Assembly (NCBI GenBank): GCA_965285935.1
Contig: OZ260664.1
Coordinates: 48,856,001 to 48,920,000, forward strand
Length of the DNA stretch: 64,000 nucleotides
Direction: 5' to 3'
Source of the DNA: Ophelia neglecta
Taxonomy: Eukaryota
Shown here in pieces: positions 15,516-51,918 of this stretch. Made by a program: the position numbers and the translations under genes. The notes under the pieces were generated by a model. The model ran no database searches. It was not told the origin of the DNA and worked only from the letters and a program-made list of their open reading frames with translations. Every line of letters starts with the position of its first letter. Position 1 is the stretch's first letter.

Positions 15516-17012
15516 CTAGGGTCTCAGTTCCGGTAAGTTGGATAAATCACACAAGTCCCCTTGAGAAGCTGCGATAGAGGGCGCGACCTCCGCTGTCGTT
15601 TGAGCATGAGGTTGCAGAACATCCTCCGAGCTTTCTACGTTGTCGATAGGTTCCCATGGCTGATATTCGTGTATCTCGTGGGTGACACTAAATCTCACTC
15701 GTCTCTTTTTGTCTATATCGTCCTGTACACTGGTAAACTCGCCCTTTTCGCTCATACTACCCGGGTAAATACAAATCCCGGAGTTACTCAAGGAGTTGGG
15801 GTCCACAGTTATGCAAAAGAATTCGCTCATTGATAGATTGGCCCTCGATATTTTGTCGACTGTTAAGTCTTGTTGGTTTTCCTGGACTCGTGTGTTTGCG
15901 TTATTGTGTTTATGTTTTCCCTTGTTGTCTATATCCCTGTCGGTGACATGATCGTCTGATTGTTCATGGAGACATCGAAGCTCCTCTTCTCCGTTGCTAG
16001 GAAGCGTTGAGTTACCTAACATAGAAGCGTGATCAAACGAAGAGACGCCGGAAATTACATCTTTGCTTCCAGTGTCTATGCATAGTTTTACGTCTTCTTT
16101 TGTTCCGAAATCGACTTCCGGTAGTTTGTGGTTATCTTGCTGAATACTTACGTTACCAACCTGGCCATTGACCAACGTTGGTTTATTCATTCCACTTTCT
16201 TCATTACCATTTACCACAAAGGGAAGTCGCTGTACATTGTCCGGGGCGGTTTGTGGTGCGCTCTGGGGATCTGATAATGCATTTTGGTCGCAATCCGTTG
16301 TGGCAGGTGCAAATGCTTCATTTTTCTTAACTCCAAAATGTTTCAATTTCATTTGGGTAAAGCTTGCACCTGAATTAACATTGTCACCGTAGTCAGTTCT
16401 GAGACGAGTACCCAGAGAAGAACCCATTCTTGTCAGCTCCCCTAGCTTTGCAATTTTATCTGTATCATTATGTCTGAATTCAAGAAAAGTGTTATGTGTA
16501 GGTTTTTTCGGGATTGGCAATCCGTGATTAGCACGAGTAAGGCCGAGAAGCCTGTTGTTAGCACTTCTCGTCCTGCCAGCTTCCGGTCTCGTCGTCTGCT
16601 TTGTTGCAGCGACCGAGGGAAGAACGACCGCGGATGAACTTTTCCTCCCCCACGCCTTCGTCTCATCCCACGGTTTCATACTCGGCAGGGTCCCCCCAAC
16701 TTTCTCATTTCGAGCAATCCACCACAGATTTTCAAAACTTACATTTGGTTCACTGCTGAGACTTCTTCCGTGTACCTTCAGTCGCTGTTTGGAGGATGAA
16801 GGTCCGGCGAGAGACCTGGGTTCCAAGTTAGACAGCGACTTTTGTAAAGGGGGTCGAGCCCCATAGTTGTTGCCATTGCTGCTGCCTTTTTTCACATTAA
16901 GTTTTTGTGAAGTACCAAAATATCCGTGAGACTGACCAAGATGAAATTGAAGCCAAGGCGACTGACCGTTGGCTACTTGGCCTTTTTCATCACGCAACTC
17001 TAAATATTCCAT
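15516..17012 (-). CDS. Single-exon ~498-aa uncharacterised, probably disordered protein with a C-terminal RVxF-type motif
   Basis: A 1.5-kb uninterrupted ORF in AT-rich DNA; first ATG at 17012 (MEYLELRDEK). S/N/K/D-rich with no recognisable globular domain. KKRRVRFSVTHEIHEY lies near the C-terminus. Confidence 0.7.
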   Translation of the reverse strand: MEYLELRDEKGQVANGQSPWLQFHLGQSHGYFGTSQKLNVKKGSSNGNNYGARPPLQKSLSNLEPRSLAGPSSSKQRLKVHGRSLSSEPNVSFENLWWIARNEKVGGTLPSMKPWDETKAWGRKSSSAVVLPSVAATKQTTRPEAGRTRSANNRLLGLTRANHGLPIPKKPTHNTFLEFRHNDTDKIAKLGELTRMGSSLGTRLRTDYGDNVNSGASFTQMKLKHFGVKKNEAFAPATTDCDQNALSDPQSAPQTAPDNVQRLPFVVNGNEESGMNKPTLVNGQVGNVSIQQDNHKLPEVDFGTKEDVKLCIDTGSKDVISGVSSFDHASMLGNSTLPSNGEEELRCLHEQSDDHVTDRDIDNKGKHKHNNANTRVQENQQDLTVDKISRANLSMSEFFCITVDPNSLSNSGICIYPGSMSEKGEFTSVQDDIDKKRRVRFSVTHEIHEYQPWEPIDNVESSEDVLQPHAQTTAEVAPSIAASQGDLCDLSNLPELRP

Positions 17013-17598
17013 TTTCAAGATACATGTAGCTATTTGGTGATATTTCCAAAAGGAGGGTGCTTTGGTATTACACTACTCCGATCCACCATAACTGAATTGT
17101 GTATTTCAATTTACTCGGTCTGCCGATTAATTTCTATATAATCCGTGGAATTTGGACGTTCAAATATCGTCTGCCCGCTGTGAGCTGCTATTACAGACCA
17201 AATTAGTAGTCCTTGTTCACCCGCGAATCGATCTGCCAATCAATCAGTGCTTTGTTCTGCTCATTAGGTCGCCTGGTGTGGACTGTAACCGCATTTTGTC
17301 GGTGTTCGTACCGAAGGCGCACGTCGATTCTGTCGCTAACAACCTAACCAGTTTTTCCTCTTTAGCCATCGCCACGAAAATCCCGATCCTATCTGCTTGC
17401 CGGTCACGCTTGCATTTAACTTAACACTTCAATGTAAGTACTTCACCTGCACATCGCTTTATCATTGCGCCCGACATGTGTGCTCAGAGAGGTTATCCAT
17501 GTCATTTATCTCCTTGCTTTACTTAGCTTTTCACAAAACATATGAGTTGAATGCAGATGTCATTCACCAAGCGGTCTTAAAATTATAACTCCCTGGCC

Positions 17599-29185: not shown

Positions 29186-32100
29186 ATGATTGCCTCCCAG
29201 AAGCCGACTGATTACAGACGGCGAGACGTGCCTCCAACACCACAAAGAGTCCCTGATAATCACAGACGACAATACAGGAAGGTGAACTCGGGCTTTAGCA
29301 ATCTCTCATATGTTGGACACGAGGAAGTCCTAGAACGCCCATTTGCCTATACGCCTAGCTATCTTCCATCTACCGATTCTGTTTTTCAAGGCAAAGAAGA
29401 CGGGACTGAGAATACAGCACATCATGTCTTACCTGCCAGAACACAGCGGTCTTGGGACGTTAACCTGACAGCGGGACCGTCAGTAGCCACTCAGGAACCT
29501 GACATACATTGTATTGCTTCTTATCCACAACATCTCCCGTTTGAAGAAAGGCAGATGGTCCTAGAGCAGTTATACCCTGGATCTAGATCACCGATAGTCG
29601 AAGGACAGGTGCACCTTGCAGCTCCTAATCGAGGCTCCTGGTCGTCTAGCTCTAGGTCAAATGGACCTTCCACGCCGCTTATCGAATCCAAATCCCCCGA
29701 GCTTTTACTAGCCCTACATACCTCTCGGACGCTCACCTCCTCATCTGATACTCTCAATCGCCCACCGCAAAGCCACTCTTTTTCGTCCGGCCAAAAATAT
29801 CAGGTAGACAATAAATCAGTACAATCATGTGATAGCACACAGGAGGTCAGCGATGATAAGGTGTTTGCCTCAAATGAACCAAATACCAACAAAAAGCCCT
29901 ATGACCAAAGCCGAACAAGATTAGAACAGCGACATGACCTTGACCTACATATCGCCTTTGACTTTTATACTCAGAATCCTCTCGATGTTCCCCATTCACC
30001 GAGTTACATGAGTGGCGCTGGTGATAGTCAGTCCCCTTACATGGACTTGCTTCAGGCCACTAAGCAAAACGATCAATTTCTTGAGGGTATGCTGTTGAGA
30101 AGTGTTCGCTCTGATGGTAAGTCATTTTTATGTATTTTGAAGATGAAATAAAAAGATATGTATTGCATGTAAAGTGTTCCGTTCCACGCCGCCGAACGGC
30201 GCTTTGACTTCCGCTACTAAACTGTTAGGACCACACTAACTTTCGTTCTCACATTTTGTATCCAGGCCTGGGGAATTACTGTGGTACTGGAGTAAAAGCT
30301 CATTAATATGATTATGATTTTGGGAAATTATCAATAAATCGCTAAGTACTCTTAAGGGGTGGAGATTTGCATTCATAGTCAAAATACGGGATTTTGCGTC
30401 CAATGTTTCACTCTATAATCCTATCTGCTTATTTTACAATATAAAAATGATACAGTGGAGTGTTTATCTTGGCCAATGTCTGATGATTCTTTCTTGATTG
30501 TGTATTGGTTGGCGGATTCTCAAGTCTATTATTTGAGCTCGACTTACCTGATCTGAGAGTAGTCGAGCCGTTTGACTTCCAGAAGGCATGATTGGCCAAT
30601 CAAGCTTGCACAGAACATTTAGATCAAATATTCATCTAGATGCACTAACTCACGTAATGCCCCGGTCACTCAAACCAAGAATTTCCCACGAACCCACTAT
30701 GTTTGTCCCACGGATGGGCGTTTCTCAAAATATACGATACGAACAATAACGAATACATTACGGTTTGAGAACGTTTAGTACGTCAACGGTAATGAGCAGA
30801 TTGGCGCCGGACACACCTCGGTTGACATGTGTTAATGACTGGAACCACTAAGGTTCCAATGCGGCTCTAGAACGGTCTACTACAGACAACACGAACTTGT
30901 ACGAACTAGGTTATAGTATGGTTTATCATCTACCTGGCTGCATGAAATCCGCGATTGTGATTGGATCTCTGCCCGGAGATATATTGCCGTATCACCGAAT
31001 TGGAACCGATCAAGTCTGTTTTCCGAGTTCGATGTCAGTTCCAGTGATAGAATTGATGATTTGTGATTGCCTTTATTAAAATTTAATGCAAAATTGATGC
31101 ACAGAATTTATGTGTGTAGGTGATAAAATCGTAACATCAGGCTTTATTCCGTGATATTATTTGTACACCCCTTAGCTAGCCGGAAACACATCAGTGGTGT
31201 ACGGCAATTTGCAGGGTGTACACATCCTTATCACGAGATTAAACATTTTTCTTTTTATGCTAGCTGTATTCCTCTTGAAGGTTGGGCTAAGAATAATTTC
31301 GCGCCGCTGGTCATATGTTCATATACATTTGAAACCTAGAACCGAAGTTAAAACAATAGATCTTATTACTTGGTTATTGGTTAATCATACATATGATAGC
31401 AGATCGTTATGGTTCGTGTCAAATCGTTATAAACCGTAGTAGGCTAAATTGTGTCAACCCGGCCGTATTCGCGATGGAACCTTTCTAGATCGCAACAGGC
31501 GGTACTTGGTCATGTACATGTACTCGTAAATGGTACTTAACCATGCTCCAATGGTCAGATAACCTTACTGAAACCCCAGTGTCCTCGTAGTAGGTAGTGT
31601 TACTTTGTGGTCATTCCGGGTCTACTCAACCATTTTTCCACAAATATTCTACGAAATAAGAACCCATGGAGTCGATGCTTATCTACTATTAATGCTCTAT
31701 ACGGATAGAAAAATCGTGGTGCTAAACCCGAAAGTTTTGTACCTGTCCAAACCTCCCGGGTGGGTACAAGGATACATACGAACTAGTATGAATAACCTCG
31801 AAAATTAGATACAATTTGTTACAATACGAATTCACTGCATGGTAATCCATCCGTACAGAATTCGTACGGGCATTCGTATAGTTGCTGTGACTGGTGCATT
31901 ACCAAATTGCCATCTTCCGTGACAGAAAGAAACGCTACACATGTAAAAGTTAATTAACCATCAATCATGGATATTATCATTGATCTCTGCTATTTTAAGT
32001 CTCAAAGATCTTGTCGTAATTCAATCTGTGGAATTTGAGATAGTATAAAGTATGCTGTTTGTTCATCAGTTTCCCCTCAACTGCGTTGTATTTTATTGTG

Positions 32101-33580
32101 TAAACCAGCTATAAACCAAGACAGACGATGATTGCCAACATGGAATATGAATGGCGATTCTTTGTGCAAAATGCCTTCATAGGAAACAATGCAAAATGCA
32201 TATATATACATATGAATGCATCGGGTATGAAGCGGGTAACGGAATTAAAACATCACGGGAGTTAGTTCCCATCTCTTTTATTATTGAACATAGGTGCAAT
32301 CTGCATGTAATTTCTAAATTTAATTATTTTTTCATAAGTCCAGACACTCTGTTTTTTTAGCCAACAAACGTGTAGTGTTTCTAGAGGATAAAAACATATA
32401 TACATACAAATTCGTCCTTGTATTAACGAATTAGAGTAAGGGAGTTTATGTGGTATATATAAGTGCACTCAACTGAATTTGAGTCAATACCGTATTTTGA
32501 ACTGTTGTATTCCAAATATGAGTTTCGAAATAAAATCAGGTATAAGTAACCTATAAAATTAGCTAGCAGACACCGAGGGGCGTGTATTGTCATACATTTA
32601 TTTATTTTGTTTCATTTCCTCTAGCACTGTTTCCGTTTGTCAACTACGTCGTCTTCAAGAGTGCCCCTGGATCAGCACGCCGAATAAAGACTCCCACTCC
32701 ATCATCCCAAGCCGGTAGAACTTTCCCTACGACCCAAGTGGAGGGAGAAAGCAACCTGCTGTCTCCTAGAGTGGAGTCAGACCGCAGTAAATCTTCAAAC
32801 GATAACCTCGAGTTCATTGAAATGATCTCCAGTCAAGGTAAATTAATTTCCAATATATAATATTACAATCATGACTACCTTAATTCAAATTCCTTTTTGA
32901 GTCTAAAACCATTGTTGTCATTTCAACCGGACTATAAATGGGTTAATGTATTTTATTAATGACGCATACATGTGTCACAAATTATTGAATATCAGCTTTT
33001 TCCAGTGATTGAAATCGAGTGGTCGACTGTATAAGATCTCGTCCGTATACTCGTGCAGAGTATACCCGTATAAATCACCGGTCATCAACTATAATAGATT
33101 TTTGTCCTATCAGATTAGATGGTTGATTTAGCAAATGTATCCTTTTTTTTTATTGTAAGATTCTTAACATACAGCAACCTGTATATTTTTCTAATAACAG
33201 GTGGCTACAAAGAAGCCTTCACCTTCATCGACAGAGGACTTCCGATCCTACCCAAAAAGGCGGCAAGCCTAAACACTGTATACCTGATCAGTGCATTTAA
33301 GACACTAGAAAGTCAAGACACCCGCGAATTGGATGAAAGTTGGAGTGTATGGAGTGGTGCCGACTTTATTGTAGAAAATATTCCTCCTATATTGAGCCTT
33401 CAGCGATTGACTTTCCACAAGGTTAAATACAATCTGGACAAAGAAACATTTCGATACGTTCTAATGTGTGAATTGACGGAGGGCCTGACAAAACTATCAC
33501 GTACTCTTTCCTTTGTGGAGTTGTTAAGACTGAGACAGTGTGGCTACTCCAATGTATACGTTCCTTTGCAACACTTCTGA
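29186..33580 (+). CDS. Uncharacterised protein with a long disordered N-terminus and a C-terminal DUF7153-like domain
   Basis: Exons 29164-30116, 32625-32837 and 33201-33580, joined by phase-1 GT/AG introns. Motifs EGMLL...FPFVNYVVFK and YLISAFK..LDESWSVWSGADFI..LQRLTFHK..YVLMCE..LRLRQCGYSNVY match my recollection of DUF7153. AATAAA at 33695. The frame is open upstream of ATG 29186 to the acceptor, so earlier coding exons are possible. Confidence 0.8.
30658..31898. mobile_element. Non-autonomous PIF/Harbinger-like DNA transposon (~1.24 kb) in an intron
   Basis: Imperfect terminal inverted repeats TGCCCCGGTCAC and GTGACTGGTGCA, flanked by TAA (30655-57) and TTA (31899-901), with subterminal ACGAA/CGGATG motifs mirrored at both ends. 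Confidence 0.7.
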
Positions 33581-34274
33581 AGACTAGATGATGCTGATAG
33601 TGGTGGATTAATATTCCTTTTCATCTTAAGAAATCTAACCCACGAGGAACTAGATCAATCAAGATATAACCTTTAACTGTAGCTTGAATCAAGTAATAAA
33701 GGGTATGGATTCTTTTGTAGCTATAAGATTACCGCTTTTACCTGTATTATGTTCCTAGACAGATGCTGAATGCTTTTCCCCATGGATATATTATACAGGC
33801 ACAGTAGGAGCAATTAATTCAATTGGCTGCTCACGGATTGTCGATCGATATTGACCAAGAATCCATTGGGGGTATTTATCTCGTATAATACCGAACATCT
33901 TAGCTTGACCGGTGTCTTGATTATCACTTGTACAAAGTAGAGGCTAAAAGAGTTCGGTATTCATCAAAATTGGACATTTACTGGTCACATATTAAAAGTA
34001 CTTTACCTAGACCTACAGTTTTGTAACAGATGTGCATAGTAAAATGATAACAACACAACTCACAAATCAACCTTTAATACTGTAACACATACCCGAATTC
34101 ACTGGTAACATTTTGACTCTCGGGCTCTTTGAGTTGGAGGCAACGTCTTCTATTTTATAGCAGGCTGTCTTATTCAAAACTTGTTTTATGTGACATGTGA
34201 CTTATATATTGGACTTTTATACAGGTTTTCACGTAATAAAAACGTCGATTAGCCTAATAATGAAGATTTTCGGA

Positions 34275-36491
34275 TTAATTGATTATAGTTTGACTTGGGG
34301 TATGCAAGTCGATATCTACGCCCCTGATATCATTGTCACCCTGTTGGCTGAACCTGACCTGGGAATGTCCGCTCGGTAGGGTCTGTTCAGTTTTCAACCT
34401 ATAAGCCAGCATTATAAAAACGACAAGAAGAGCGGTTCCCAGCAAACATACGATCACTAAAACGACGATAGCTCCCGGACCGAGACCGGACGGGCCATGC
34501 GCTGGCTGAGTCGGCGTAACCGGGGTAAAAACAGGTATTGTCCCTGAAAAATAGACCAAACAGTACATCAAGGATATCCTTATTATTGTCTTATCACCTT
34601 TTTTCATTCGGAGTTAAATGCATAATATTTGGTTGCTTTTGTACGATCCTTTAAACTGCAGTTCTTTTTTATATGGAATGCATGACGTTTACCTTCTAGG
34701 AGAGTTATATACCAATAACTAGTCTCGCTACAAGCAAAGCCGACTGATTCGACATTGAGTCCTCTTGTATGATACCATGACAAAAACGTCTCTTCACCAA
34801 GTTCCTCACCTGTTTCAACATCAACATTCGTTTTATTAGGCGCACTGGACCAGTTATGAAATAAAACTATGATGCCCATGCGAAATAATTCGTACATATT
34901 TGTTTTTTTAAATGACCCAAGAGCTAGTACGCATTATATTGCATTAGGACAAAAAGTGTTAAAATATGTTTCCGAAAAGTGATCCTCTCTTCTAGCCTAT
35001 GTAAATCGAAGGTTTTCATGATCGTGCGAGGAAGTCGAAATTTGTTTTAATCTTTCATTTAGTGAACTGAGAACGAGAACAGTTTCCCATCTGATCTTTT
35101 ATCAAGCCGCCCACAGCCCCCACCCGGACACCCCACCCACCCTACCCTCATCTCGCTTGAGACACTGCGTCCATATTTTGTGTTCCGTATAATGCTATAT
35201 ATGCTTATATGCAATCCTACCGGTTCCAACTTCGATCGATTGCCCATCCCATGCAATCCAGAAAGATACTTGTTCGCCACCGTCTAGTATATCATCAGTT
35301 TGACTGTGAACCAAGACTTCATTGGATCCGAAAATGCCAATGGAAGACCTTTAAAGAGAGTAATTCGATTATGAAAAAGCACAAAACATCATGTGACACC
35401 AAAAATTAAAAACTCATCAGACATTTACTGGTTACAGGTAAATAACTAATCGGGAATGCACTGTTACTAAGTTCCTATTTTGATTTGGCCTGATATTAAA
35501 CCTACCGTGAGTTGTTTAGTTCTCCAAGTCGTACCTCTATCATTCCCTCAGTGAACCCGATGTATCTTTCTGATAGAATCAAGCAAACCATGCCAGACGT
35601 TTTCACGCTAAACTTTACCAATGTTGTGTGTCTAACTGTCTTCCAAATATGTTGATACTTTTCTTCCTTGGAGACCATTGCGAACGCTCTTTGCGCTAAA
35701 GGTGTATTGATGGAACAGATAAAATAACGCTTTAATACCTTAAATCTATGTTGTTTCATTCATTTTAGAGAGTGTTGCTATAGGGAGTTTTCACTCGATT
35801 TTCATCGGGAAAAGATCTTTTTTTAAAGATGCTCTGAAATTAGAAATATACGGTAACAGGCATAAACAAATTCAGTTAACCACGCCGTTATTTGTCCAAA
35901 ATATTAATAAATAACTCTCTTATGGCAGCATTTATTAAAAGAAAAACACGCTAGCTCTTCAGAATTCAATTGGTCCCCTTCTTGACAGATTTGCATGCCG
36001 GGTTAACCTTCAACTAGGCCTAGTATGTGGGGTGAAATTTGAAAGCAGCTCACCGAAAGCCTCAGAAACCCTCCATAGTCCGGCTATATCATCCTCTCCG
36101 AAGATACTCAAGTATTTAACAGTAAGGTTGAGTCTATGATCGTCGGACCACCGAATGAACTCATTCTTTCCGAATACAGAACCCGCGCCTGCGCAGAGAG
36201 AATTCCCATTCCAGCTGACCCATAAATCCACTTCCCGTCCACAAATGTATGTGACATTGTGTTCGAAATGGGCGGTGCTCACAATTTCGGAACCTATTTT
36301 TATTTTCGCCATACTGTTCGCCAAGTCGATGATTATATTGTATTTTTCCGTTTTGTCTTCCATATCGGCTTCTTCTCTAAGGTCGATATATAAAACCACG
36401 TTGCATGCGACGAGGGTAAACTGGAACCAAGTTGAGTTCTCGGTCAACTGCAGCCAAACTGGAGTGTTTATCTTTGACATTAAGATGTCGC
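34275..36491 (-). CDS. Terminal cassette 3: domain A3, domain B3, stalk/TM/tail ending ...PSQTIIN*
   Basis: Exons 36491-36054, 35695-35506, 35348-35221, 34809-34693, 34543-34275. TM region GLGPGAIVVLVIVCLLGTALLVVFIMLAY. Confidence 0.85.
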
Positions 36492-39400
36492 CTGCAAACA
36501 AGGAAGAGATTTTATATGCTCTGGACTACGTTCACACGACTTTCCTTCTTGGATTACAGTTTCTCGACTATAACTGTAAGACGTTATATGAGGACAATAA
36601 ATAAAAAGCGCCCATTTTCGTAGCTGCCAGGTAAACGACGCAAAGGAGCTGAGTGCCTGTTGCACAAAAGAACTCTGGTAAGGTTTTTTTGAAATCGTCT
36701 GTCACAGAGGTACATGTTGCTTGCTTACTTTGGTCCTGAATTAGATAGATCGTTTCGAAGACAAACCTTAGCGATTTTATTTTAGAACTACTACAAAGGG
36801 CTGCAGCCCGTTGTCAGTGGTGTATATAAAAAAAAAGATTGATTAGAGAATTCAATACAGTTTTTTGAAATTGCCATCTGCTAGTTTGCCACTGTTTTGT
36901 CTTCACCTGCCTACCATTCATGATAACCCCATTAGCAAGGGATTCAACGTATATGTTTATCATGCGAGCTCTGCTGACTGGTATTGATTATTTAAGTCAG
37001 GCAACTTGCAACACTGTGGACTGAGTTCACACAAGTTTTATGATGTTAAAATAAAGTTGAAGCAAGCTGTGTGTTCACGCGAGCAGTCCCTCGTGTGGTG
37101 TATTTGTATACTTTGTTTGTTCATTCTAATGCATCCATCGCTTGAACATTGGCAGACTGCCTATCAACCAGCAAGAAATAAAAACAGAAGTTTTCACGTT
37201 GGAATTATTTCTGAAATGTAAAACTTTATTGTACCTAGATATAAATTTAAGATGACTGACAACTTCTAAATGTGGTTTATAAGGCTTCATACAAGTCGTT
37301 TCCTAATATGCAATCGAATCAACCACTGGTATTAAAAAAATACTCAAAACAGCATTATGCATTTATATAGCATAATAAATATGTCGCCTACTAAGAAATA
37401 ACTTACATTAAAGAATAGATAACTTGAGCAGAAAAGGAAACTTATGGTTTTAATTTTCCCGGAGTAAATTATAAACAATAATTTATTTGTTCAAAATGGC
37501 TAATTGTAATAACTGTATGCAAACAGCGGCACACAGGTCAGATGATTCCCACCATATACGGTTTTAAAAAATAGTTTCAGTTGAATCTGTGGTATGATTC
37601 TTCCATGGCGACAGGAATGCGATCAATGATGCGCTCACTCCTGTTTGGCTCTTCCATTTGACCAACTTCCCCGTGCCTTTCACAAAATGACAACCCAGAA
37701 CCATTTCTGTCCTTGACAACAAGTATCACCAAAAACAGTATTACAAAAATGGTGAACAACGACCCTATAATTATGCCGGCAATAGCTCCGGCCGACAGGC
37801 CACTGGTCTCTGGCAGGATAGTGGGGGTCTCTGTCGTCGGCGGATTGAAAGAATCTGAATAGAGGACATGGTACTTTGAACAGCCGCACCAATAAGGAGC
37901 TACGGCAAACAGTTTGCGTATTCTATCATATAAACTATTTTTACCGGTATGCTCATTTAATTAAAGATAATCACAAACCATCAGCATGTATTAAACTCCA
38001 GTAACATTCTTTACGATCCCCGGTTGAGAAACCAATCACATCAACAACTAACATCCTTGGCGTATTATAAGACAACAAAATATCGTCACCCTTTACATTT
38101 CCTGGATTGAAAGACAAACACGCGTCTGCTATGCATACAAGACAGGGGAATTCTCACATCACGTTTATTTGCTTATGTAACTTAATTGAGCAAGAAAGAG
38201 AAAAGTATAAACCTTTCCCAATTTCAATTCCTCCGCCTCCCCACGAGATCCAGAATGGTCTTAATTCCCCACAGTTAAGTACATCCGGTGTTTCCGATCT
38301 GTAAATTGGTTCACTGTCATACAGGCCAATGGCTGTGCTGTAACGAAGGTGATAAAACACGAATCGAATTTACCAATTTTAACGAATCTCCTTTCGCCAA
38401 ACTAGTACAACTACATAGTTATTTACGTGTCTTAATCGCGATTGGAATCGGCCTGTTATAAATATGTGTTATATCAAAATACGATTTTTGGTGAGCAAAA
38501 CACTAACGCTTTGTTGCTATTCGTTCCAATTCTGGCCTCGAGCATACCGTCTGCAAAGCCTACGCCCCGTGACGAGAACACGAGTCTGGCGTCACTGCAC
38601 CCCATCACCGCAAACCTCAGGAAGTCACGGTGTCGTACGGAGGTGTATACCTGATGACGTGCAGTTTTCTCCGTGCTGTTGTGCTGAGCTTTCTTTTCTT
38701 CTGTGCCCGGAGTAACAAATATAGTGTTCTGTCCTATGGACAGATATATAGCATGGAATGTATTTGGTATTTTAGTTGTCAAATTTTTTGAAAAAAATCG
38801 CCTACTTTGGAATTATTAAATGAAATGAAAAGCAAGATTGTTTTAACCTGGAAAATTGAGTGCTTTTACATGGCGCAAAAATTTGTTTTTCTTTTATCAG
38901 ATTTACCAATAATGTCGTCCATTCTCCAGTGCCCCCACTTCCCTTCGAAATCATCATGTACACTGATGGCATTTACTGTCAGATTTAGAACCTCGGCGTT
39001 ATCATATAGGAGAATCTGATTTTGTCCAGGTAAACTGCTGTGTCCGACCGCTATTTGCTCATTGTCCCAACTGATCCAAATGTCTCTTTCGTCTTCACAG
39101 GTAAGAAATTTTTCTATTTTCTCAGTAGCAACGGTCACTTTATTGACTCTTAATGACACTAAGTTATTAACAATGTCGAATATAACAGTGTATTTTCTAT
39201 TTCCTTCAAACCCAGGCAGTCCTAGATCTAAGTCATGACAAAGATCTATGTAAATTGCCGAGCCACACGATGCTAAAGCAAGGCGTAACCAGGTTACATT
39301 TCCATTAAAAACGGTCATGCTCTGGGCGGCAAGTAGGACAAACAATTCTTCACCTATACAGGTAGATTAAAGTATTCTTTAGTCAATCAGAGCTGAGGGA

Positions 39401-42400
39401 CGTATTACTAACTGCAGCAAAAATAAAAAACTAAAAGAATGAAGCCGTTTAGAAGTAATATTTTTATTAAACTGCAAAATATGTACATAAGCACTAATAA
39501 AGTATGACTAACTGTCATGGTCTAAGTAAAGTTAGCAGAGCCCTTGAAATAGTAGATTCTTTGATAAATATACAAGGTCTGAATTAAACATATCGTAAAT
39601 AAATTATACATATTGAAATTCGCTGGACATAGAAATGAATGTGATGGCGTTTCGACATCTTGTATGTCGTTTTATTTCACCAAGCAGAGCAATTAAGCCA
39701 ATATCATGTCTTGTTAGTTGAAGCGGTCATATGGTTCTGTCATGACAGTCACTGGCAAATCAGGCATAACATTTCTCTCCTGGTTCAGTTGAGGCTGGTT
39801 GCTTTCATTTCTGCGAGATATTCGTAGTGTTGGAAGGCCTAATGCAGACCGCCATTTCATCACTAAATGAACTAAGAGCATGATCATCAGGGTGGCGATG
39901 ATAGAGCCGATGACGATTCCTGCTATGGCTCCTGGGCTCAAACCTCCCCCGCCCTGGGGCGGAGGCCCGGTCACCGTCGGCGGAGAGACCGTGGGAAATG
40001 TGTCTGGAAATGTATTTCAGACCATTGTTGATAAGTAGAATTATTCTGTTCAGTCTTGTTTTTTTTTAGCATTGGGGTCTACGAGGTGTACAGTAAAGGA
40101 AATAGTTACCTCAATGACACGTCTTTATCTAGGATATCGATTAAGTGCTCACCAAGTTGTTGTCTTTTAAAGGATTTTATATTTAGCCCGGCTCTTACCG
40201 ATTATTGGACTATTTTTGGATAATGATTTGGCTTTGTCTACCTGCCCGTTTTTTCACACATATATAGTAGTTTTTAAAATTTCTCACCATTAGCCAGTAA
40301 TATACTCCAGGTAGAGTTGCGAGAATCGTGGTTTGAGAATCCCACGGCGTCGACGTGTAACGCTCGTGGTGTGTAGAAGGATAATATTTTACCCTCAAAT
40401 ACAACATCACCTAATACATCATGAATAGAACGGTTTATTATTTTTATCTATTAGACAATTATGGTACTGAAAGCAGCTGATAGAGCATATAGTATATTAA
40501 TGTATACTCTAAATTTCACATTATGGAATAAGAAAAAACAGATATTCCTACCCTCGCCGATTTCAATTCCTCCATTCGTCCACGATATCCAGAAAGACCG
40601 AAGCTCGTCACAGTGTAGAATGTGTGGGGTTGGCATGCTGTATACGGCGTCTGCGCCGAATATTCCAATTTCTGTGCTAATCAAGTCAAAGAGGATGTTA
40701 TTAATTTGTAATCCGGTCCGGGCAATTACTGGAATGGTCTGATATATTTCTTAAATGGGGAAGGTACATGTATATACCGTGTGTTTCCCTTCGATCCTAT
40801 CCTAGCCTCGAGCAGGTCCTCTGTAAGGCTGAGTCCTCTGGATAAGAGGATCAGGCGGGCCTCACTGCACCCCATCACGGCGAACCTCAGCGAAGATCGG
40901 TGGCGAACGGACCGGTACACCGGCAGGTGGAGGTGGGGGGACGACTCCCCGATCCTGGTCTTAGCCATTTCCGAGGTACCGGGCAAAATGAACACAGTCT
41001 TCAGTCCTGAAAGCGCGCTAACGATTTTAGATCAACTGTGTCAAAGAAATCATTAAATTCTCAAATAGGCGAATTTGATATTATGTATAGTCCAACATGC
41101 CCTACCGACATTTTCAAGACTTCTCCAATGACCCCTCGTCTCCCGTGGTTTGTGGTACATGCTAATAGCATTCACTGTCAGATTTAATTGTTCGGCGTTG
41201 GCATATTGCAAAATCTGGTTTTGTCCCGGTATACTGCTGGTGCCGATTGCCAGTTGCTGTCCTTGCCAGCTCACCCAGACATCCCGCTCATCGTCACAAC
41301 TGATCAGGTCTCCGATTGGCTCAGACGCCACATGTGTGCCTCTGATGCGCAATGTAACCGTTTGAAAGTCCTTGTCAAATTGGAATTTATAACATTCAAA
41401 TCCCCCGCTTAATGGATCATCCGATTGTGTCAGTTCAATCAGTTCGATGGAAAAGGATTTCCCACAGGTAGCAAAAGACAATTTTATCCATGTAATGTCC
41501 TGGTCAATAACAATAATGCTCTGTGTTCCAAGTTGGTAGTAAAGTTCGTCCCCTACAAACAACGTTCACAATTCGAATCCAAACAGTATCGAATAATATC
41601 TATATAGAGTACCAGCACCACGGGAAAGTTCGAGAAATAAACACGATCCGAAAATGGAATTATGGAAGAATGTGAAGTAAGAATGCACAGAACGGCGAAA
41701 AAGAGATAATCCTGGTACCGATATTTTACTGTGTTGATATATACAATCGAGGGGGAACTTAAAGTAAGAAGGTTTTGGGAAAGACACACATGTCATAGCG
41801 AACCGCACCCAAATATATTCGGACGTTTAGGTATTATTAAATAGTAAGAGAAAAGAAATGATATTTACACAGCTATTATAGGCCTCATACTTCTAAACAT
41901 GCGTTTTTGTTCATTGGAAACGTAGATACAGACAAGAAATGACGAGGTCATAAAAGTGAACACAAAGTTCTTCCAAATAGAAGAAATGCAATTCTACAAT
42001 TGCAGATGCAAGAATCGACGAAAACGCATATGGCGTATTAGTACCTAATCAAACTCATATTATTTGTCTTTGTGCCATCAGAAGAGCGAGAATTGTTACC
42101 GTTCTCTTCTTCGAATGTCCAGAGTCCATTGCTGGAACCTCCTGTACTAACAGAGAGGGCCCCGACGTAGGGCAGGTCTTCCACTTCCAGCGAGATGATG
42201 GCGTCATGTCCGGGTAGGTAGCCACGGCCTAGGGTCGGTTTACCGTCCCACCAGCTCAACCAAAAGTCAGTGTCGTAATCACAACTCAATAAACCAGAGG
42301 TCTCCACCATGTCTATTGGTAATTGGGAAAGAAAATAAAAGACAGGAAATGAGTGCGGGAACAATGTTTGTGTTTTGTAGGGTGGGGTGTGTTAAAACTT

Positions 42401-45400
42401 AAAGACTTAAAAAGTCCACAACCGAATGATCTCTTAACTTTGTGATAGTTGAAATAGTGGTATACAGAAATTGTAAAGTAGTTAGCTGGAATGTTCAAAT
42501 CCACATCATATTGGGCTTAGCTCGAGGGTTGGCCCGAAGGTCCCAGCCTCTCGAAGCTAGGGTCTTGCACTAACATGTGGGCACATGTTTAGAGTATGTG
42601 AGAGAAGCTTGTATGGGAGATCATTCGCTCTTGTCGAAGATTCCTCTCCGTGTCTCCTCTACGCAATCAACAGCAGGAAATTGTAATTATTTGTCTTGAA
42701 CTAATCAATGGCTATTAATCATGTTTTCCTGACATGCTTCAGCCAATAAAAACTTAATTCATTCATTCATGTTAACCTGTGTACTATCACATGATCATGT
42801 TATCAACTGTGTTCGTTTTCGCATGCACCATATTGGTTCCGGCCCGAGGACCGTTAAAATAGTAAACGTTACAACGGTTGCCATCCGCACCACGTTGTAA
42901 CGCTTTGCTAGATTAACCCAGAATCGTGTTTAGATCTAATTTGATATGCACTTTGATTTTCGTGATATGTATTATAGAACACTTTCTTGTTGTCAATAAT
43001 TGTTATAGCGTACGCATGATCGTCATATTAATTTACCATAACAGTGCAGTGCTTACCTGTGACGTTGTGGGCAGTAGTGATATTTGTGTTAGTCACTTTA
43101 CGAACATAAGTGCGATTCCCCCCTTCGCTGATGACCAGGTCGTAATAATCATTGTCTCCAATCCCTGGAACTGGAAGTAGTGTCACGTGACCTTCTTCGC
43201 AGGCCCTTAGTCTAAAATTGACGTACTCCTGATTTGCCACAGTCCTGATCATCTGGTCATAGTGATCAGAGGCAGCAGGTGTAACCAGCTTCACTCGCTC
43301 ACCTGAATTCGGAATAAAAACCCGGGTGTTTAGAATTTGCCTTCTTTCAACTTCCTGCGGGGCTACACCCATGTTTTTATTTAGTTTTATCATAGTCAAA
43401 ATACTTTGTTATCTATTTATCGTATATATACATTTCCTAAGGAAGTCCTGGTATTCTAGGCCCTCCTTTTTGCCCGGTCGCACATTGCTGCTTAGTATCG
43501 TCTACCCACAGGTGCTTGTCGTAGGTAAGTACCCAGATAAAATTCAACCCCCTATGACCAAAATCGACCCCATTTTAAAACGCCTTATGGCCTGTAATAC
43601 CTTTAAAATTCGTAAAGTTTTAACAGACCTACTCGCTTTCTAACCGGTCGACATTAATAGAATTGCGGATATCTGACGGTCCCGGTATTTATGTTTCGTT
43701 TGTCTCCAGTTCACTTTCGCACATGCTTTCACATATCACTCGCTGATAATCCCGGGATGTTAACTTGGGCCTCCATATTAGCCTGTACTGACCTTGACCC
43801 TAAACTCACCGAGGCGCAAGCGTATGACGCTAGGTTAAATGAACCGCCAATCAGAGGACGGCGCTGCCTTCGCTCCGGTCCTGAGTGGGATAGTTACAGC
43901 ACTGATCGCCATATATATGGAGTTTTACGATGGGGTACCGGTCGATTTTGGTCGAAGTTCGTGTAAGGTTGAATGCGGCCAGGAGGGTGAATTTTTATCT
44001 GGGCACCGAGCTCAGTATTGGGATCGTGTAAGCGACTTATTTTGGACGAAAGTTTTAATATTTGATGCGAAGTTGCGAGTTATTTGCCATCAGGTTTGCG
44101 AAAAACCTCCACTGCCTGGTTCCACCTGTTGCCCAGAAATAGGCTTTTTTTATGGAAATGGCACTTGCCGAAAATCCCTCTCAATTGCAAACCATTAAAT
44201 ATTTACATAGATACGCGGCGGTAGGGCAGTTGGATTATAAGCAGCACTACTGTACCGACAGCAGAGCAGCTTTACAAGCAGCAATTTATATCTAAACATT
44301 GTTTGGAATAAAATGTATCAAATTGAATATACATGTAAATACGTTCAATGTTTGTTTTGTTTCGTATGTTTCGTATGTTCCGTATGCCGTTTGTATCGAA
44401 CTTTACCACTAGACAAGAAGCCTTTTAAACAAATTATGCAGATATAATTGGAAGTTTTCTAGGATATTTTACCACTGTCGTCCCGGAAGTGCACAAGACC
44501 ACTCGTGTTTGGGGTGGTCAAGGCTATTGCTTGAATTCTGCTCACAGTGTTAATGGCGACTGAAAACCACTTGTCAGTACCATAAACCACACCCGGACCC
44601 AGCTCAATCACACCATTGTGCCACGTCAGCCAATTGGGAGTGACCACGTCACACCTTCAAATAAAAAGATTGCGATTTTAGAAAGTGTTCATTGTTTAGT
44701 ATCCCAGCTTGCTCTCTCAGGTCCTCATCTGAGATTGGTCTTAATGTTTCCACAATACCTCTACTCGTGGTTTATTAAGATAATTTGCCAAGTTTATTAT
44801 CGGTATAGTAGGTACACATTTTAATGTGATTACAACGGCTACGTACGTCACTGAATTTTGGATGTCAAAAGTGTGAATCTCTTCATTTACTCTAAGTATA
44901 ACCTTTGTATTTTGGTTTGCTCCGAGGATGAGTTTTACAATCGAATTGTCCTGAAATTACACAATCTTTTATTGAATTTTAAATAAGAATCTAAATTCAT
45001 TGAAAAAAATCCATCACTTTGCATAGTAAAATCGATCCATATACTGATAATAGGCCTACAAGTACATTCATATAAACGCTTGTTTCACACTTTAAGCAAT
45101 TTAGTTTGAAAAAATCCTAACTCTTTACCTCACTATAAGATTTCAGTTCAATGTGAAGTTCACCTAGTGGGCAGGTGGTATGTTGAAATATGAAAAATTC
45201 TTTTCTTGGAGAAGTAACTAACACCTGTTCAAACATCTCTGTTTCGTTGGTCGGTCTGGTAAAGACTGTAGTTGTAGGTTCTGGGAAGACGGAGACAATA
45301 ATAGTTTTCGAGGTTTTATCAAAAACTACACTCTTGATTTGTTCTTATTTAATACAAGATATCTTCCCAGCCATTGCGAATGATAAATCTTGGAAAACTC

Positions 45401-47638
45401 TTTTCGAAAGTTGCTGGTGGCATCGGCAAAACTAAGTATATGATTTACGCGGATTAAATTATAAATCAAAGGAAAATAATTCCACACTGTTGCCATGTTT
45501 TACCCATGTCTTCTGTGAAATACCAATAGCCATCATGCTGAAAGCCCGGAGAAAATGAAATGTGTCTGACATCTATGGGCGTGTCATCTTTCCACCTCAA
45601 AAACCGGCCCAGTCCGTATACAATGCCCGTGCCAACCTTAAAATTTCAAAAGTGACATGAACTAACTGGCATAGATGATTATGGGCCTGCGCCCGACAGT
45701 TTTCGACGGTTTCGGACCAATTTCATGAACTATTCTTTAGTTTGTCTGCCGGGAATCCAGTCCCGGTTTTTCGTAGATATCAAGACTGAATCAGCGAAAC
45801 CGCTGCTTGCACGTGGCTTTTATCTTTGCAAACGCCATTCATGAGCAAGGCCGACCTCTAGTGCCTACATACACATATTTATACTATTGATGATGAAACA
45901 AGTTGCTCAGTATTAAGAATATTGAATAATTAAACACGACATACCTCAATAACTCCATCGTTCCAGCTCACCCAGTACTGTAGCGGTGCGGCGCAGTTGG
46001 CCATGCCTAGCTGATTGTGTCTCGCCTTAATTGTGTCGCCATCCCCACCAATCACGGTCCGGATTAACGACTCGCTATTATTATCTGCACCAATCACTAC
46101 CTCGTATAAGTTTTTATCTAAATCGCCAAAAGTTTGTGTCAAAACGATACTATGGTAACATCCTTTTGCCGAAAAACTGAAGAACTTTTTGGTGGACACT
46201 TGTTTCCATAGCGTTGAATACAACAATAACTCCTTTTCCAGGCTTATGTGCAAATATTCGGCTGAAAGGAAGAAATTTTTGCTTTTAGTCGGTTATATCA
46301 AAGAAATAAAATGATTCTGGTGATTTAAGTTGAGTAATTTGTATAAAAATTTGGATTCATTTCTCACAATACATGCAATACGTTTGTTTCGTTAGATTTA
46401 GAGTATTTGCCTATCACATAAACACTTATAACAAGTCTTCAAAACCTTATATTACTCATCCTTTTGTCAACCATCAGGCGTGCACTGACATATTGATAAT
46501 GAGATTGTTATCAATGATAAATAAGCAATTTCGACTTGAATGTAATTAATTCAGTCAGAGCTTCAAAAGCTATCCATGAAATATATAATGTATATTTACC
46601 TGTGTTTTCATGCACCTGCCACAGTGCTGATGTTTGTATACTGTTAAGACCTATGCTGAGTAGGACCCTGGGGTTTGGGTCTGGATTAGACCAGCTCAAC
46701 AACTCCTCAATCCCGATGGTTGGTCCACGACCAAACTGAATAGATCAAAATATTAGTCAAAATAAGGAAGCGATCCATTTAATAATCTTATAATTCTTTT
46801 CTATAACGTTGAGTGTCTCAAGTTTCAATATAACTATAAATATATACAAGTTCATTGATCGTTTGTTTATCATAATTCTAGTATAAAACGAGCAATGCTA
46901 TTCATTTTCTTTCATCGAAGCATAGTCACCCAACATCTCCATGTTTTCAACAAGCCGAGTGATTAAAATGTTTCCAATGGCTGATAGTATAAACCCTCGA
47001 ATTTATAACAGAACTTGGTGGTATTTTCTTCACCTGAACGACGTTGAAGTCCCAGCTAAGCCAGAACTTTCTGTATTCGTCACAATGAAGTACATCTGGA
47101 GTCTCCGAGCGCGTTATGTAGCCGATCTGAGAGGGGTATCTCAAACCAGTCTGGTTGTTATACTGGTCTCCGATTATCAACTCCACCGTGAAGTCGTCTG
47201 TTGCGTCCTTATAAATAGGGTCGTGACAGGTAGATCGGATTACAATAAGGCAAAAACAGCCAGATCAAGAGCAGTTAATAAGTGTATCAACAGACCTAGT
47301 ATCGTGCCACAATAACGATTTCATAGCCACATTTTGATTACAGTAAATGTAATCATTTTATTTTTATTTTTATTTAAAGAAGTGGCCTTAATATCATCAT
47401 TATTTTGATGCTAATTAAAGAAAAATTACGGTGACAAAGCGCTTTGAGTGATATGTATGCATATGGTGACCGATCGCTCACCAATGCTGCTTGCTCACCA
47501 TTTCCTGGGAGAGCGCCAGAACAGCATTACGGCAGGCTTTGACGGAGAATACGAAACTAAACCTGTCCTCCACCACATACCAGATATTGTAGTGGTTATC
47601 TGGGGATAACCCGGCTGTAAAAAGTGTACTGAGCTCCC
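34275..47638 (-). CDS. Type I membrane protein locus with ten tandem Methyltransf_FA (FAMeT-like) domains and three TM/tail exons
   Basis: Recurrent domain motifs F-x-V-x-[AG]-C, [YE]-x-x-IG-x-x-x-N, TPD[VI]LxCxE, FW[IL]SW-x-x-G-x-IE[IV]G. All exons have GT/AG sites and are in frame. The ATG/signal-peptide exon was not securely found. Confidence 0.88.
37482..37487 (-). terminator. Candidate polyadenylation signal AATAAA for cassette 2
   Basis: About 90 nt after the cassette-2 stop. A second AATAAA lies at 37225-37230. Confidence 0.45.
37577..39353 (-). CDS. Terminal cassette 2: domain A2, domain B2, stalk/TM/tail ending ...ESYHRFN*
   Basis: Exons 39353-38907, 38733-38508, 38337-38213, 38101-37979, 37854-37577. 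TM region GLSAGAIAGIIIGSLFTIFVILFLVILVV. Confidence 0.88.
39463..39468 (-). terminator. Candidate polyadenylation signal AATAAA for cassette 1
   Basis: About 250 nt after the cassette-1 stop, followed on the minus strand by a T-rich tract (39440-39419). Confidence 0.55.
39714..41552 (-). CDS. Terminal cassette 1: domain A1, domain B1, stalk/TM/tail ending ...EPYDRFN*
   Basis: Exons 41552-41106, 41006-40778, 40676-40552, 40410-40288, 40003-39714. TM region GLSPGAIAGIVIGSIIATLMIMLLVHLVM. Confidence 0.88.
42100..47638 (-). CDS. Upstream part of the locus: four FAMeT-like domains (D1-D4)
   Basis: D1 exons 47638-47499, 47207-47034, 46735-46600. D2 46261-45945, 45636-45504. D3 45280-45129, 44950-44847, 44654-44473. 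D4 43302-43057, 42312-42100. Every inter-domain intron is phase 1. Confidence 0.85.
43471..44120. mobile_element. Probable truncated Harbinger-like non-autonomous element in an intron
   Basis: Begins TGCCCGGTCGCACA, resembling the left end at 30658, and has a CpG-rich interior unlike the flanking intron. The right TIR was not found, so the end coordinate is approximate. Confidence 0.4.
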
Positions 47639-49610: not shown

Positions 49611-51918
49611 TTAGTAAGCCATTTAACCATGCCTGAAGTCTTGGCCACAGGCTGTAGTTCCTGATCCATGTTTTTAATTTAAAATGCAAGATTTAAAAGT
49701 GTTGATATATAAGCTCATAATACAAATTCAAATGGTGTCTGTCTCTATGCACCGCCGCATTGCGCATGCCGAATGCAAGTAAAAGCGTTATATTCCATAC
49801 ACAGTTACATATGGAAATACCTAACTAATTAATGAACAATCAAGAAATGCAATTGCATTTCTATAAAACCTTTCACGGTGTCTTAATCACGTAATATAAG
49901 AAATTCAACACACCTGCAACAACAACTAAAGGTAGAAGTATTCCATTCATCGTGGTACTGCGATTATGAGTTATCGAGGCGATCAAATAAGAAAAAATGG
50001 AGCAATTTTTTTCACATATTGCCTTTTGTTCTGGTTCTTAGTCATGAAATGGTAGACGGGTATAAACAATATATGAACAACTTCTCTCATCGCCAACCAC
50101 GTAGATTGCTATCAGTATCAAACTTTGCCCGCGGTCTGTTCGGCTCGGGACACTGAGACAGCCTACGCTACATGACATTGTACATGACTTGAAAACTGCT
50201 ACAATCTCACCTGCATGGTTCAAAGGGGGCTGATTTATCAAGGTGAAGATCACAGTTGACTCTTATCGGTAGATTGCGCGAATGCTTCCCAGTCCCGAAC
50301 AGTATTGTCTAGCATAGTTAAGGAACTCATTGCTCAGTGGAGTTGTTTGGTATATACAAAAACACATTTATGCGCGCTTTCATAAGGGCAAATATGACAG
50401 CAATATCTCAATTATTCTGTTGTTTATTATCCAAGCCGTTATGCGGACAGCACTACTTTATAAAATACAAATCGGTTCCCTCACAACCACTTTGCCGTGA
50501 CCTATTTACTCTTTATATTTTTCTATGCTATAATTCATAAAGTAAAGGATGTGTTTTTTGTCAAATTCAAATAGATCTACTGCGGATTGTTTTTAGCCAT
50601 TCACATGTCTGCTGATGGAAATGGTTTTCTAATATTATCCATAGTACTAATAATAATTCTTGCTGTCAGGCTTACGTTATCGCGGATGGTTTGTTACTAC
50701 TTTAATCAGTGAAACACCATAGGCTCAGCGCACCTATTTATCCACTATGATAGAGCCACAATAAACAACGTGCGTGTGTTCCATTTTAAATAAAGGAAAA
50801 GTTGTAACTTTATTGCATCTTCGAATGCAGATCATCCGGAATGGGGGGGGGGGAGCGTGGGTTTTTTTCGCAAGATCTTGTGTTCTGGGTGTAATGGTTT
50901 TTTTTGTCCATGAGAGGGAGGGTTTTAAAAACATTTCCCCCCACCCCCACCCATACCCAAACCCTTCCCACCTCTGCAGGAAGATTTCTGGAACATTCCT
51001 CAACTAGATATTAATTCCAGTGATTCGACTATCTAACTAAATAACTTCGAAGAAAGTACTTTCGATATACAACAAAACTTTTCTTTGATTGTTAATTAAT
51101 TCTTGCTATCAGAAAAAGCTAATTAAGTAGAGCCCGTGGTTATATATTGCAATGACACGGAAATAAATTTGGGAGTGCTGTATAGAGGGACGCTTGCGGG
51201 GGGTCAAAGGCTCTGCGGGGTCTTTGATAGGGGGTGGCGTAGGGGAGTCATAGAATTGCACGTCTCTGACAGGGGGAGGGTGCATACACGTTTCAGCGGA
51301 GCTTAAGCACCTCCCCGCCCCCACCTCCTCCCTCTCGTAGTAAAAGACCACCACCTCACTTGACTAATTAATAAGAAATCAACAACCAAAGCTCCGAGCA
51401 GTTAACCTCAGTTCCCTCCTGTGGTCAAACGCATCCACTGTACGCTTTTTGCTATTTCATTGGATGTTGTTTGATTTAATAATCTTTAAAATAAACTTTG
51501 GCTGACATTTTGGCGAAACCACACTAGGCATAACTAAACTCTCTTATAGAAACCAGCACACGTAGAACACTAAGATATATAATGTCCCGACACGGTTTCA
51601 GAGGATATCAATGTTTGGTCGGGACTTTTAACGACGGTCTCTAAGGGTTTGCTTTTGAGCCTAACTGGGTGTAATGACTCCCCACCAATTTTTCAATGCT
51701 TGCTTCTTATCACAAGGCAACCAATTTTCTTCGTTAAATCTATTTGACATCCAATAGGTGAATGGGCTTTGTTAAACAAACAGTGGCAAATATACACTTC
51801 ATTAAACCATACAACCGAGAGTGAACCCTTGAGCTCATTTTTCCAGGATTAAATAACCCAACTCTTACTAATAGGCCCTCCGGTATAGTTAGATTGGCTA
51901 CCTAAGGAACACTCCAAA

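Follow-up and report, generated by a model that had tools for sequence, protein, structure and literature searches.

How would three membrane-anchoring ends, lying one after another behind a single head, be put to use? This question is raised by a 64,000-nucleotide (nt) stretch of the Ophelia neglecta genome (GenBank assembly GCA_965285935.1, contig OZ260664.1, positions 48,856,001 to 48,920,000; referred to here as the window). Exons for four FAMeT-type domains (Pfam family PF12248, Methyltransf_FA), named D1 to D4, are followed there by three paralogous modules, each of which encodes two more domains, a stalk, a membrane helix and a tail. The answer that we put forward, and to which we give an even chance, is that the locus would be one lophotrochozoan-type gene from which a family of lectin-like surface receptors is made, with a constant four-domain head and three anciently duplicated terminal modules; chained forms with eight or ten domains may coexist with these.

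One head and three terminal modules

The window is eukaryotic DNA of approximately 38-40% G+C and contains no N. FAMeT-like open reading frames occur only on its minus strand, between 34.3 and 47.3 kb. Database searches were run exon by exon, and exons were joined locally only for alignment, counting and simulation.

The three five-exon modules are located at 41552-39714, 39353-37577 and 36491-34275, and all of the coordinates given for them in a first-pass annotation of this DNA were reproduced from the sequence. The same is true of its claims that all three modules have the intron phases 1, 1, 2, 1, 1, and that each of them is open to its own stop codon (39714, 37577 and 34275) and ends in its own membrane exon; all 12 internal introns are GT-AG in a script check. 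The donor at 42100, which ends D4, and the module acceptors at 41552, 39353 and 36491 are all in phase 1, and the first exon of each module sits behind an AG. All three joins read open, for 405, 400 and 381 codons in modules 1, 2 and 3, respectively, counted from the shared G at 42100.

The modules are built on one plan. Exon 1 encodes one whole FAMeT-type domain, exons 2-4 encode a second one, and exon 5 is the anchor exon, which consists of a Pro/Thr-rich stalk, a hydrophobic helix (approximately 23 residues) with basic residues behind it, and a tail 40-60 residues long. A single hydrophobic helix near the C-terminus with basic residues after it, which is the pattern of a type I single-pass protein, is present in all three modules and in the relative described below. 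The protein sequences have diverged strongly, as had been claimed, with 45% identity between modules 1 and 2, 31% between modules 1 and 3 and 27% between modules 2 and 3. A profile made from the three first exons matches these three sites with E values of 1e-65 to 1e-74 and has no other match in the 762-Mb genome. In agreement with the first-pass annotation, neither module 2 nor module 3 has a copy of D1-D4 alongside it. Each stop codon is followed by a polyadenylation (poly(A)) hexamer, and the pyrimidine tracts of the three first acceptors increase from proximal to distal, from 10 of 20 positions in module 1, the weakest, to 13 in module 2 and 14 in module 3, the strongest.

A distant relative has an orthologous locus. 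A HMMER scan of 1.84 billion protein representatives, with module 2 exon 1 as the query, gave 36 matches, the named ones being from a brachiopod and an annelid; no product of O. neglecta is among the 36. The best match is a 161-residue open reading frame on an ENA contig (locus L001), with 47% identity. Word-index protein searches with the first-exon profile and with the D4 exon gave zero matches.

Locus L001 is collinear with the window. In it, D1-D4 (40-64% identity) are separated by a phase-1 intron of 156 nt from a single module, which has the same five exons (447, 208, 128, 123 and 305 nt) and is followed by an unrelated ASC channel gene. D1 is 41-62% identical between the two (tblastx) and the phase-1 acceptor at 47638 is common to both; D2 is 38-49% identical and D3 has three collinear matches of 47-55%. 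The best conserved ectodomain exon is D4 exon 1 (64% identity over 84 residues), followed by D4 exon 2 at 61%, where the exon of the relative ends at the same residue and in the same phase. The intron after D4 also has a phase-1 donor and a phase-1 acceptor in both loci, and the predicted splice from D4 to module 1 is confirmed by homology.

The triplication was sought in the relative and was not found there, as L001 has one module only. Since this module is single, the ancestral protein had six domains plus an anchor, and modules 2 and 3 are added copies of only the 3' part. On the same comparison, module 1 is the original end of the four-domain gene upstream of it. No part of the protein is better conserved between species than the last exon of module 1: the last exon of the relative is 69% identical to it, versus 43% to that of module 2 and 31% to that of module 3. 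The ectodomain part of the relative's module has 44-45% identity to modules 1 and 2 alike and 31% to module 3. A distance quartet bootstrap puts modules 1 and 2 together in 68% of replicates, with distances of 0.90 versus 0.94-0.98, and does not settle how modules 1 and 2 and the relative branched. These values suggest that the duplication that separated modules 1 and 2 is roughly as old as the split from the distant relative, and that module 3 is either older or faster evolving.

Divergence between the modules is strongest in the tail. While tail 1 has kept 69% identity between species, the last exons, with helix and tail, have 17-43% identity between modules, the lowest value being that of module 3 versus module 2. 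At their 3' ends, tails 1 and 2 and the tail of the relative encode Tyr-x-Arg-Phe-Asn/Ser, with the Phe one residue before the C-terminus (window 39717-39760 and 37580-37620; L001 13840-13865), and this ending is absent in tail 3. A Tyr-x-Arg-Phe end has the form of a tyrosine-based sorting signal. Judging from the presence or absence of this motif, trafficking may not be the same for all modules.

Selection on modules 2 and 3

The strongly diverged copies with their open frames and splice sites had been taken as a sign that modules 2 and 3 are maintained by selection, and this claim is borne out by other means than the one first proposed. The ratio of non-synonymous to synonymous substitution rates (dN/dS) between modules could not be used; silent sites are saturated, with third-position differences of 0.63-0.71, and the Nei-Gojobori dS is not computable. 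Simulations and polymorphism counts were used instead. In neutral simulations that started from module 1 and allowed substitutions only, none of 5000 runs kept the approximately 400 codons free of stops, and this result still holds with half of the observed coding divergence placed on one branch.

Polymorphisms were taken from three genomic DNA runs of one sample, the contigs of which include introns and show no spliced junctions. All eight of the small polymorphic indels, together with a 114-nt deletion, are non-coding, although 47% of the compared stretch is coding (P 0.0065). The classes of single-nucleotide polymorphisms (SNPs) come from 40 of 79 differences listed and are given supportive weight only. 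Among those listed, eight of the 17 exonic SNPs are non-synonymous as compared with an expected 78% (P 0.005); in module 2 the number is six of 13, versus an expected fraction of 0.78 (P 0.013), and its exon 1 has five synonymous SNPs and one non-synonymous SNP. Stop-free frames, indels that fall outside exons and a depletion of non-synonymous SNPs all point in one direction: modules 2 and 3 are maintained coding sequence under purifying selection and not relics.

Two further observations came from the same reads and contigs. The 114-nt deletion polymorphism (37415-37528) is just past stop 2 and is seen in two of the three DNA runs at approximately half depth. A short dispersed repeat at 40202-40239, in the intron between exons 4 and 5 of module 1, has three times the depth of its surroundings, and many contigs diverge into unrelated sequence on both sides of it.

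Possible ways of expressing the modules

We propose that the whole locus is one transcription unit. The ancestral gene would have encoded a type I membrane protein with six galectin-like FAMeT-type domains, a stalk, one helix and a short tail with a tyrosine motif. The 3' module of this gene, that is, domains 5 and 6, the stalk, helix, tail, stop codon and poly(A) signal, would have undergone two tandem duplications in this lineage. Copies 2 and 3 would have received no promoter, start codon or signal peptide, and because none of these came along, they would be expressible only through the upstream exons. The likeliest join would be from the phase-1 donor at 42100 to 39353 or 36491 in place of 41552, with cleavage past the chosen module. 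The outcome would be three receptors that have the four-domain head in common and differ in their membrane-proximal domain pairs, helices and tails. When a copy was new, the joining of 42100 to its duplicated acceptor would have given a protein identical to the original, and so, the origin of the arrangement could have been neutral.

For partial duplicates that selection retains despite their lack of a start, the simplest route to expression is the upstream gene, and shared use of the upstream exons appears to be the most parsimonious reading of the locus. We consider it probable that modules 2 and 3 are reached from the upstream exons in a shared transcript of one form or another. The more specific version, in which donor 42100 is joined to 41552, 39353 or 36491 and the transcript is cleaved after the chosen module, is in our judgement evenly balanced; here we infer both the splice choice and the use of the poly(A) sites from gene structure. 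This version is favored because every isoform would keep the conserved six-domain architecture. Stop 1 is only 360 nt from acceptor 2, and the rise of the pyrimidine tracts from proximal to distal is suggestive of acceptor competition.

The modules might also be three separate genes, with modules 2 and 3 having their own promoters and small signal exons that were missed or that are farther off, for example, nested in upstream introns. Tandem paralogues usually are separate genes, and every module comes with a stop codon and poly(A) hexamer of its own. An ectodomain of approximately 300 residues before a membrane helix requires a signal peptide, and the spacers were scanned for signal exons as ATG frames that end in a phase-1 donor. 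Each spacer opens with the 3' untranslated region and poly(A) hexamer of the preceding module. Two ATG frames would suit separate genes at first sight, and both are poor. The frame at 39518-39413, the sole hydrophobic one before module 2, has a donor that scores under all 18 known donors of the locus; as a first exon of module 2, it would leave an intron of 59 nt, versus 99 nt for the smallest one known, and it is frameshifted by a 1-nt insertion at 39460 in another haplotype. The frame at 36963-36915, before module 3, has a strong phase-1 donor, but its peptide is not signal-like: the hydrophobic core is weak and contains an acidic residue, and the start has no basic one.

There is no acceptable signal-exon candidate in the 1.45 kb of spacer, where the chance rate is approximately 0.23 per kb. 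The first-pass annotation had seen no convincing start or signal exon for modules 2 and 3, and the scan agrees with it, as a weak negative because the unvalidated scan could not confidently place the first exon, with the signal peptide, of the main gene either. In addition, the 360 nt between stop 1 and acceptor 2 would also have to house the 3' untranslated region of module 1, and a promoter with a signal exon would have to arise twice. We find the separate-gene explanation doubtful. A spliced leader, which was considered for the short spacer, was dropped as it would supply no signal peptide. In the second spacer, 23 nt at 37375-37397 match, with 78% identity, the acceptor of module 3 exon 1 together with the codons just after it (36479-36501), which could be chance or the relic of a further partial copy.

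A second possibility is chained use, in which the exon 4 donor of a module is spliced to the first exon of the module that follows, so that the membrane exon in between is skipped. The resulting receptors would have eight or ten domains and end in membrane exon 2 or 3, and each internal membrane exon would act as an alternative terminal exon within one long gene. All of the boundaries are in phase 1 and so every chain would be in frame. Long FAMeT arrays do exist as single proteins, e.g., in Lingula, where 13 stretches of a 3814-residue protein match, and contig 2 of this genome has a 140-kb FAMeT array. Like the alternative ends, chains would depend on the upstream promoter and on read-through of poly(A) site 1, and both may coexist. 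However, chains depart from the six-domain architecture that is conserved in the relative, and the distance from the exon 4 donors to their own last exons is 284 and 124 nt, compared with 934 and 1487 nt to the following module. The membrane exons of all three modules are also intact, so that each of them must serve as an end. Chained use appears unlikely.

Modules 2 and 3 could also be unexpressed or decaying remnants of partial duplications, as their lack of a promoter or start of their own might suggest. Module 3 matches Pfam weakly (14.8 bits) and has lost some residues that are conserved in the other copies. Against this, approximately 400 codons and all ten splice-site pairs are intact at 45% and approximately 30% protein identity, with silent sites saturated, and the simulations, indels and SNPs described above do not fit decay, which makes remnants very improbable. 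Trans-splicing of the mod(mdg4) type, known in Drosophila, in which separately transcribed modules are joined in trans to a common 5' transcript, would fit acceptor-first modules without start codons, but the modules are on the same strand, ordered and close together, so that cis-splicing suffices, and with no sign of separate promoters we regard it as extremely improbable.

Several points weigh against alternative ends spliced from the shared head. The relative does not have modules 2 and 3, and it gives no comparative support for their use. A uniform phase 1 is common in genes for extracellular domains, which makes compatible phases by themselves a weak argument. A promoter could be present in the 1085-nt spacer ahead of module 3, and the scan that found no signal exon in the spacers gave just a weak candidate, 49950-49914, for the first exon of the main gene. 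The 114-nt deletion removes the proximal AATAAA of module 2 in one haplotype. Finally, the D4 intron was compared with the spacers for docking/selector pairing or conserved repeats, and only short matches at chance level were found.

A fourth product is conceivable at the same junction. If the donor at 42100 is unused, the D4 frame continues for 20 codons to a stop (42041-42099), possibly giving an anchorless four-domain product.

The design has several known counterparts. Its description in the first-pass annotation as a mirror image of the clustered protocadherins is fair, and the immunoglobulin heavy-chain (IgH) C-mu/C-delta region and the Drosophila genes lola and mod(mdg4) are closer precedents. 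In IgH (IgM/IgD), one upstream exon is spliced to either of two tandem paralogous cassettes, and splicing is coupled to polyadenylation. The likeness is in cassettes of multiple domain exons, each with its own membrane/tail exons and poly(A) sites; the difference is that IgH has immunoglobulin domains and a rearranged V(D)J head, whereas the present locus has FAMeT-type domains and its predicted head consists of four constant ones. The Drosophila genes lola, mod(mdg4), broad and fruitless have common 5' exons and tandem-duplicated alternative 3' cassettes, each with its own stop codon and poly(A) site. As is proposed for the present locus, their N-terminal part is constant and their alternative C-terminal coding cassettes are arrayed one after another, but they encode nuclear BTB zinc-finger proteins, some of which are trans-spliced, whereas here the product would be a membrane protein and the cassettes carry ectodomains, anchor and tail.

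In Drosophila Dscam1 (exon 17) and N-cadherin, mutually exclusive membrane-helix exons alter sorting or signalling. These are likewise alternative membrane segments on a common ectodomain, but each is one internal exon, and the downstream exons and the one poly(A) site are shared, unlike in the five-exon terminal modules here (Dscam is reviewed in PMC3364881). Clustered protocadherins, UGT1A and chelicerate short Dscam also join tandem multi-domain cassettes to shared exons and diversify surface receptors. Chelicerate short Dscam has 5' cassette arrays (PMC4835542). In all of these the cassettes are 5', with their own promoter and signal peptide, and the tail is constant, so that the present arrangement would be their mirror image.

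The design itself therefore has precedents, and its combination with a FAMeT-domain membrane receptor, which is plausible as a mechanism, would be new. If the alternative-end reading is true, the locus would be a 3' counterpart of the clustered protocadherins that does not belong to the immunoglobulin genes of vertebrates, and for the FAMeT domain family it would be the first mechanism that generates diversity through gene structure; one lectin-like head would be coupled to different membrane-proximal domains and sorting/signalling tails. If transcripts confirm it, the locus would also be a clean natural case of an intragenic partial tandem duplication that became alternative receptor ends.

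Domain family, coordinates and neighborhood

The gathering score of PF12248 is 24.2 bits. Exon 3 of module 1 (29.1 bits) and of module 2 (24.8 bits) are both above this cut-off, and in the genome scan D1 and D2 match with 32 and 41 bits. The first exons of modules 1 and 2 score 15.4 and 22.1 bits, with each piece scored alone. The best piece of module 3 is exon 2 at 14.8 bits (E 0.025), below the cut-off, and the predicted membership of module 3 in the family rests on its 27-31% identity to, and identical exon structure with, modules 1 and 2.

A structure model of module 2 exon 1 (pLDDT 82.7) is an eleven-strand, two-sheet beta sandwich. Foldseek matches it to galectin-8, -9, -4 and -7 and to CBM66 with TM values of 0.54-0.65 and E values of approximately 1e-5, at 7-12% identity; no methyltransferase fold is among the top matches. 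The predicted likeness to galectins and other concanavalin A-like lectins is thus at the level of the fold, and the identity is too low to transfer sugar-binding residues. Because the model superposes on galectin carbohydrate-recognition domains and CBM66, we predict that the FAMeT domain here is a lectin-like extracellular module and does not have a methyltransferase fold. With a membrane helix between a stalk and a tail at their C-terminal end, the products also differ from a soluble cytosolic methyltransferase such as crustacean FAMeT. A search of solved structures by sequence gave only fimbrial matches, which were judged to be spurious. When metagenomes were scanned with the last-exon alignment, 40 loci were obtained, all of which match the membrane helix alone and have no FAMeT exons; these are look-alikes.

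Crustacean FAMeT, CPAMD8, mollusc thioester proteins and abalone shell matrix proteins belong to the same PF12248 family by profile match, and several distant FAMeT-domain proteins begin with a hydrophobic leader. PF12248 proteins have been reported in secreted or extracellular contexts (PMC9358689, PMC9363628, PMC6003135). As the first-pass annotation had supposed, the papers found here that name the family describe neither a membrane-anchored six-domain receptor nor a gene with alternative modules. The present findings bear on the annotation of many FAMeT-domain genes of marine invertebrates.

Other FAMeT exons are present in this genome. There are large same-strand arrays, e.g., at 98.11-98.25 Mb on contig 2 (approximately 140 kb with more than 50 exon matches), and further sites at 55.51 Mb on contig 2, at 40.82 and 32.99 Mb on contig 9 and at 14.88 Mb on contig 8. 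On contig 9, the gene at 32.99 Mb has a single terminal membrane exon resembling those described here, which is the ordinary arrangement.

Table 1. Positions in the window of the head exons, the three terminal modules, the spacers between them and the poly(A) hexamers. The relative is locus L001.
Feature	Coordinates	Strand	Length (nt)	Remarks
Candidate first coding exon	49914..49950	-		12 codons, hydrophobic, phase-1 donor scoring under all 18 known donors of the locus; weak, from ATG-to-donor scan alone
D1	46600..47638	-		About three exons, near 47638-47499, 47207-47034 and 46735-46600
D2	45504..46261	-		About two exons, phase 1 at entry and exit; candidate splice sites
D3	44473..45280	-		Partial exon chain, one middle exon unplaced; candidate boundaries
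D4 exon 1	43057..43302	-		Phase 1 at both ends
D4 exon 2	42100..42312	-		Ends in the shared phase-1 donor at 42100
Intron D4-module 1	41553..42099	-	547	GT 42099-42098, AG 41554-41553; 156 nt in the relative
Module 1 exon 1	41106..41552	-	447	One whole FAMeT-type domain; same length in module 2 and relative
Module 1 exon 2	40778..41006	-	229	Phase 1 in, phase 2 out; first third of second domain; core 61% identical to relative
Module 1 exon 3	40552..40676	-	125	Middle of second domain
Module 1 exon 4	40288..40410	-	123	End of second domain, phase-1 donor; 47% identical to exon 4 of relative
Module 1 exon 5	39714..40003	-	290	Stalk, membrane helix, tail, stop
AATAAA after stop 1	39671..39676	-		38 nt downstream; second hexamer 39468-39463
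Spacer, modules 1-2	39354..39713	-	360
Module 2 exon 1	38907..39353	-	447	Whole domain; 43% identical to module 1, 44% to relative
Module 2 exon 2	38508..38733	-	226	Phases 1 then 2; core 64% identical to relative
Module 2 exon 3	38213..38337	-	125	Two non-synonymous SNPs
Module 2 exon 4	37979..38101	-	123	Same length as in module 1; phase-1 donor
Module 2 exon 5	37577..37854	-	278	Stalk, retained helix, diverged tail (43% identical to tail 1), stop
AATAAA after stop 2	37482..37487	-		90 nt downstream; next hexamer 37230-37225
Spacer, modules 2-3	36492..37576	-	1085	Rich in SNPs and indels
Module 3 exon 1	36054..36491	-	438	Whole domain; most diverged copy, 27-30% identical to the others
Module 3 exon 2	35506..35695	-	190	Same phases; 12-13 codons shorter than in modules 1 and 2; 41% identical to relative
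Module 3 exon 3	35221..35348	-	128	Same length as exon 3 of relative
Module 3 exon 4	34693..34809	-	117	34809 is the sole phase-1-compatible acceptor; poorest pyrimidine tract of the locus, 8/20
Module 3 exon 5	34275..34543	-	269	Stalk, membrane helix, unrelated tail, stop
ATTAAA after stop 3	34073..34078	-		Approximately 200 nt downstream

The downstream neighbor is a convergent gene on the plus strand with a DUF7153 domain (33119-33580, E 1e-29). Because this next gene is convergent, the FAMeT locus ends with module 3; there is no AATAAA between stop 3 and the neighbor. Synteny with the relative is not kept on this side, the DUF7153 gene being present here and the ASC channel gene there. Elsewhere in the window, the long open reading frames at 15516-17018, 11858-12751 and 29186-30151 have no Pfam match, and a 280-residue open reading frame on the minus strand (2377-3219) contains ankyrin repeats (E 5e-32).

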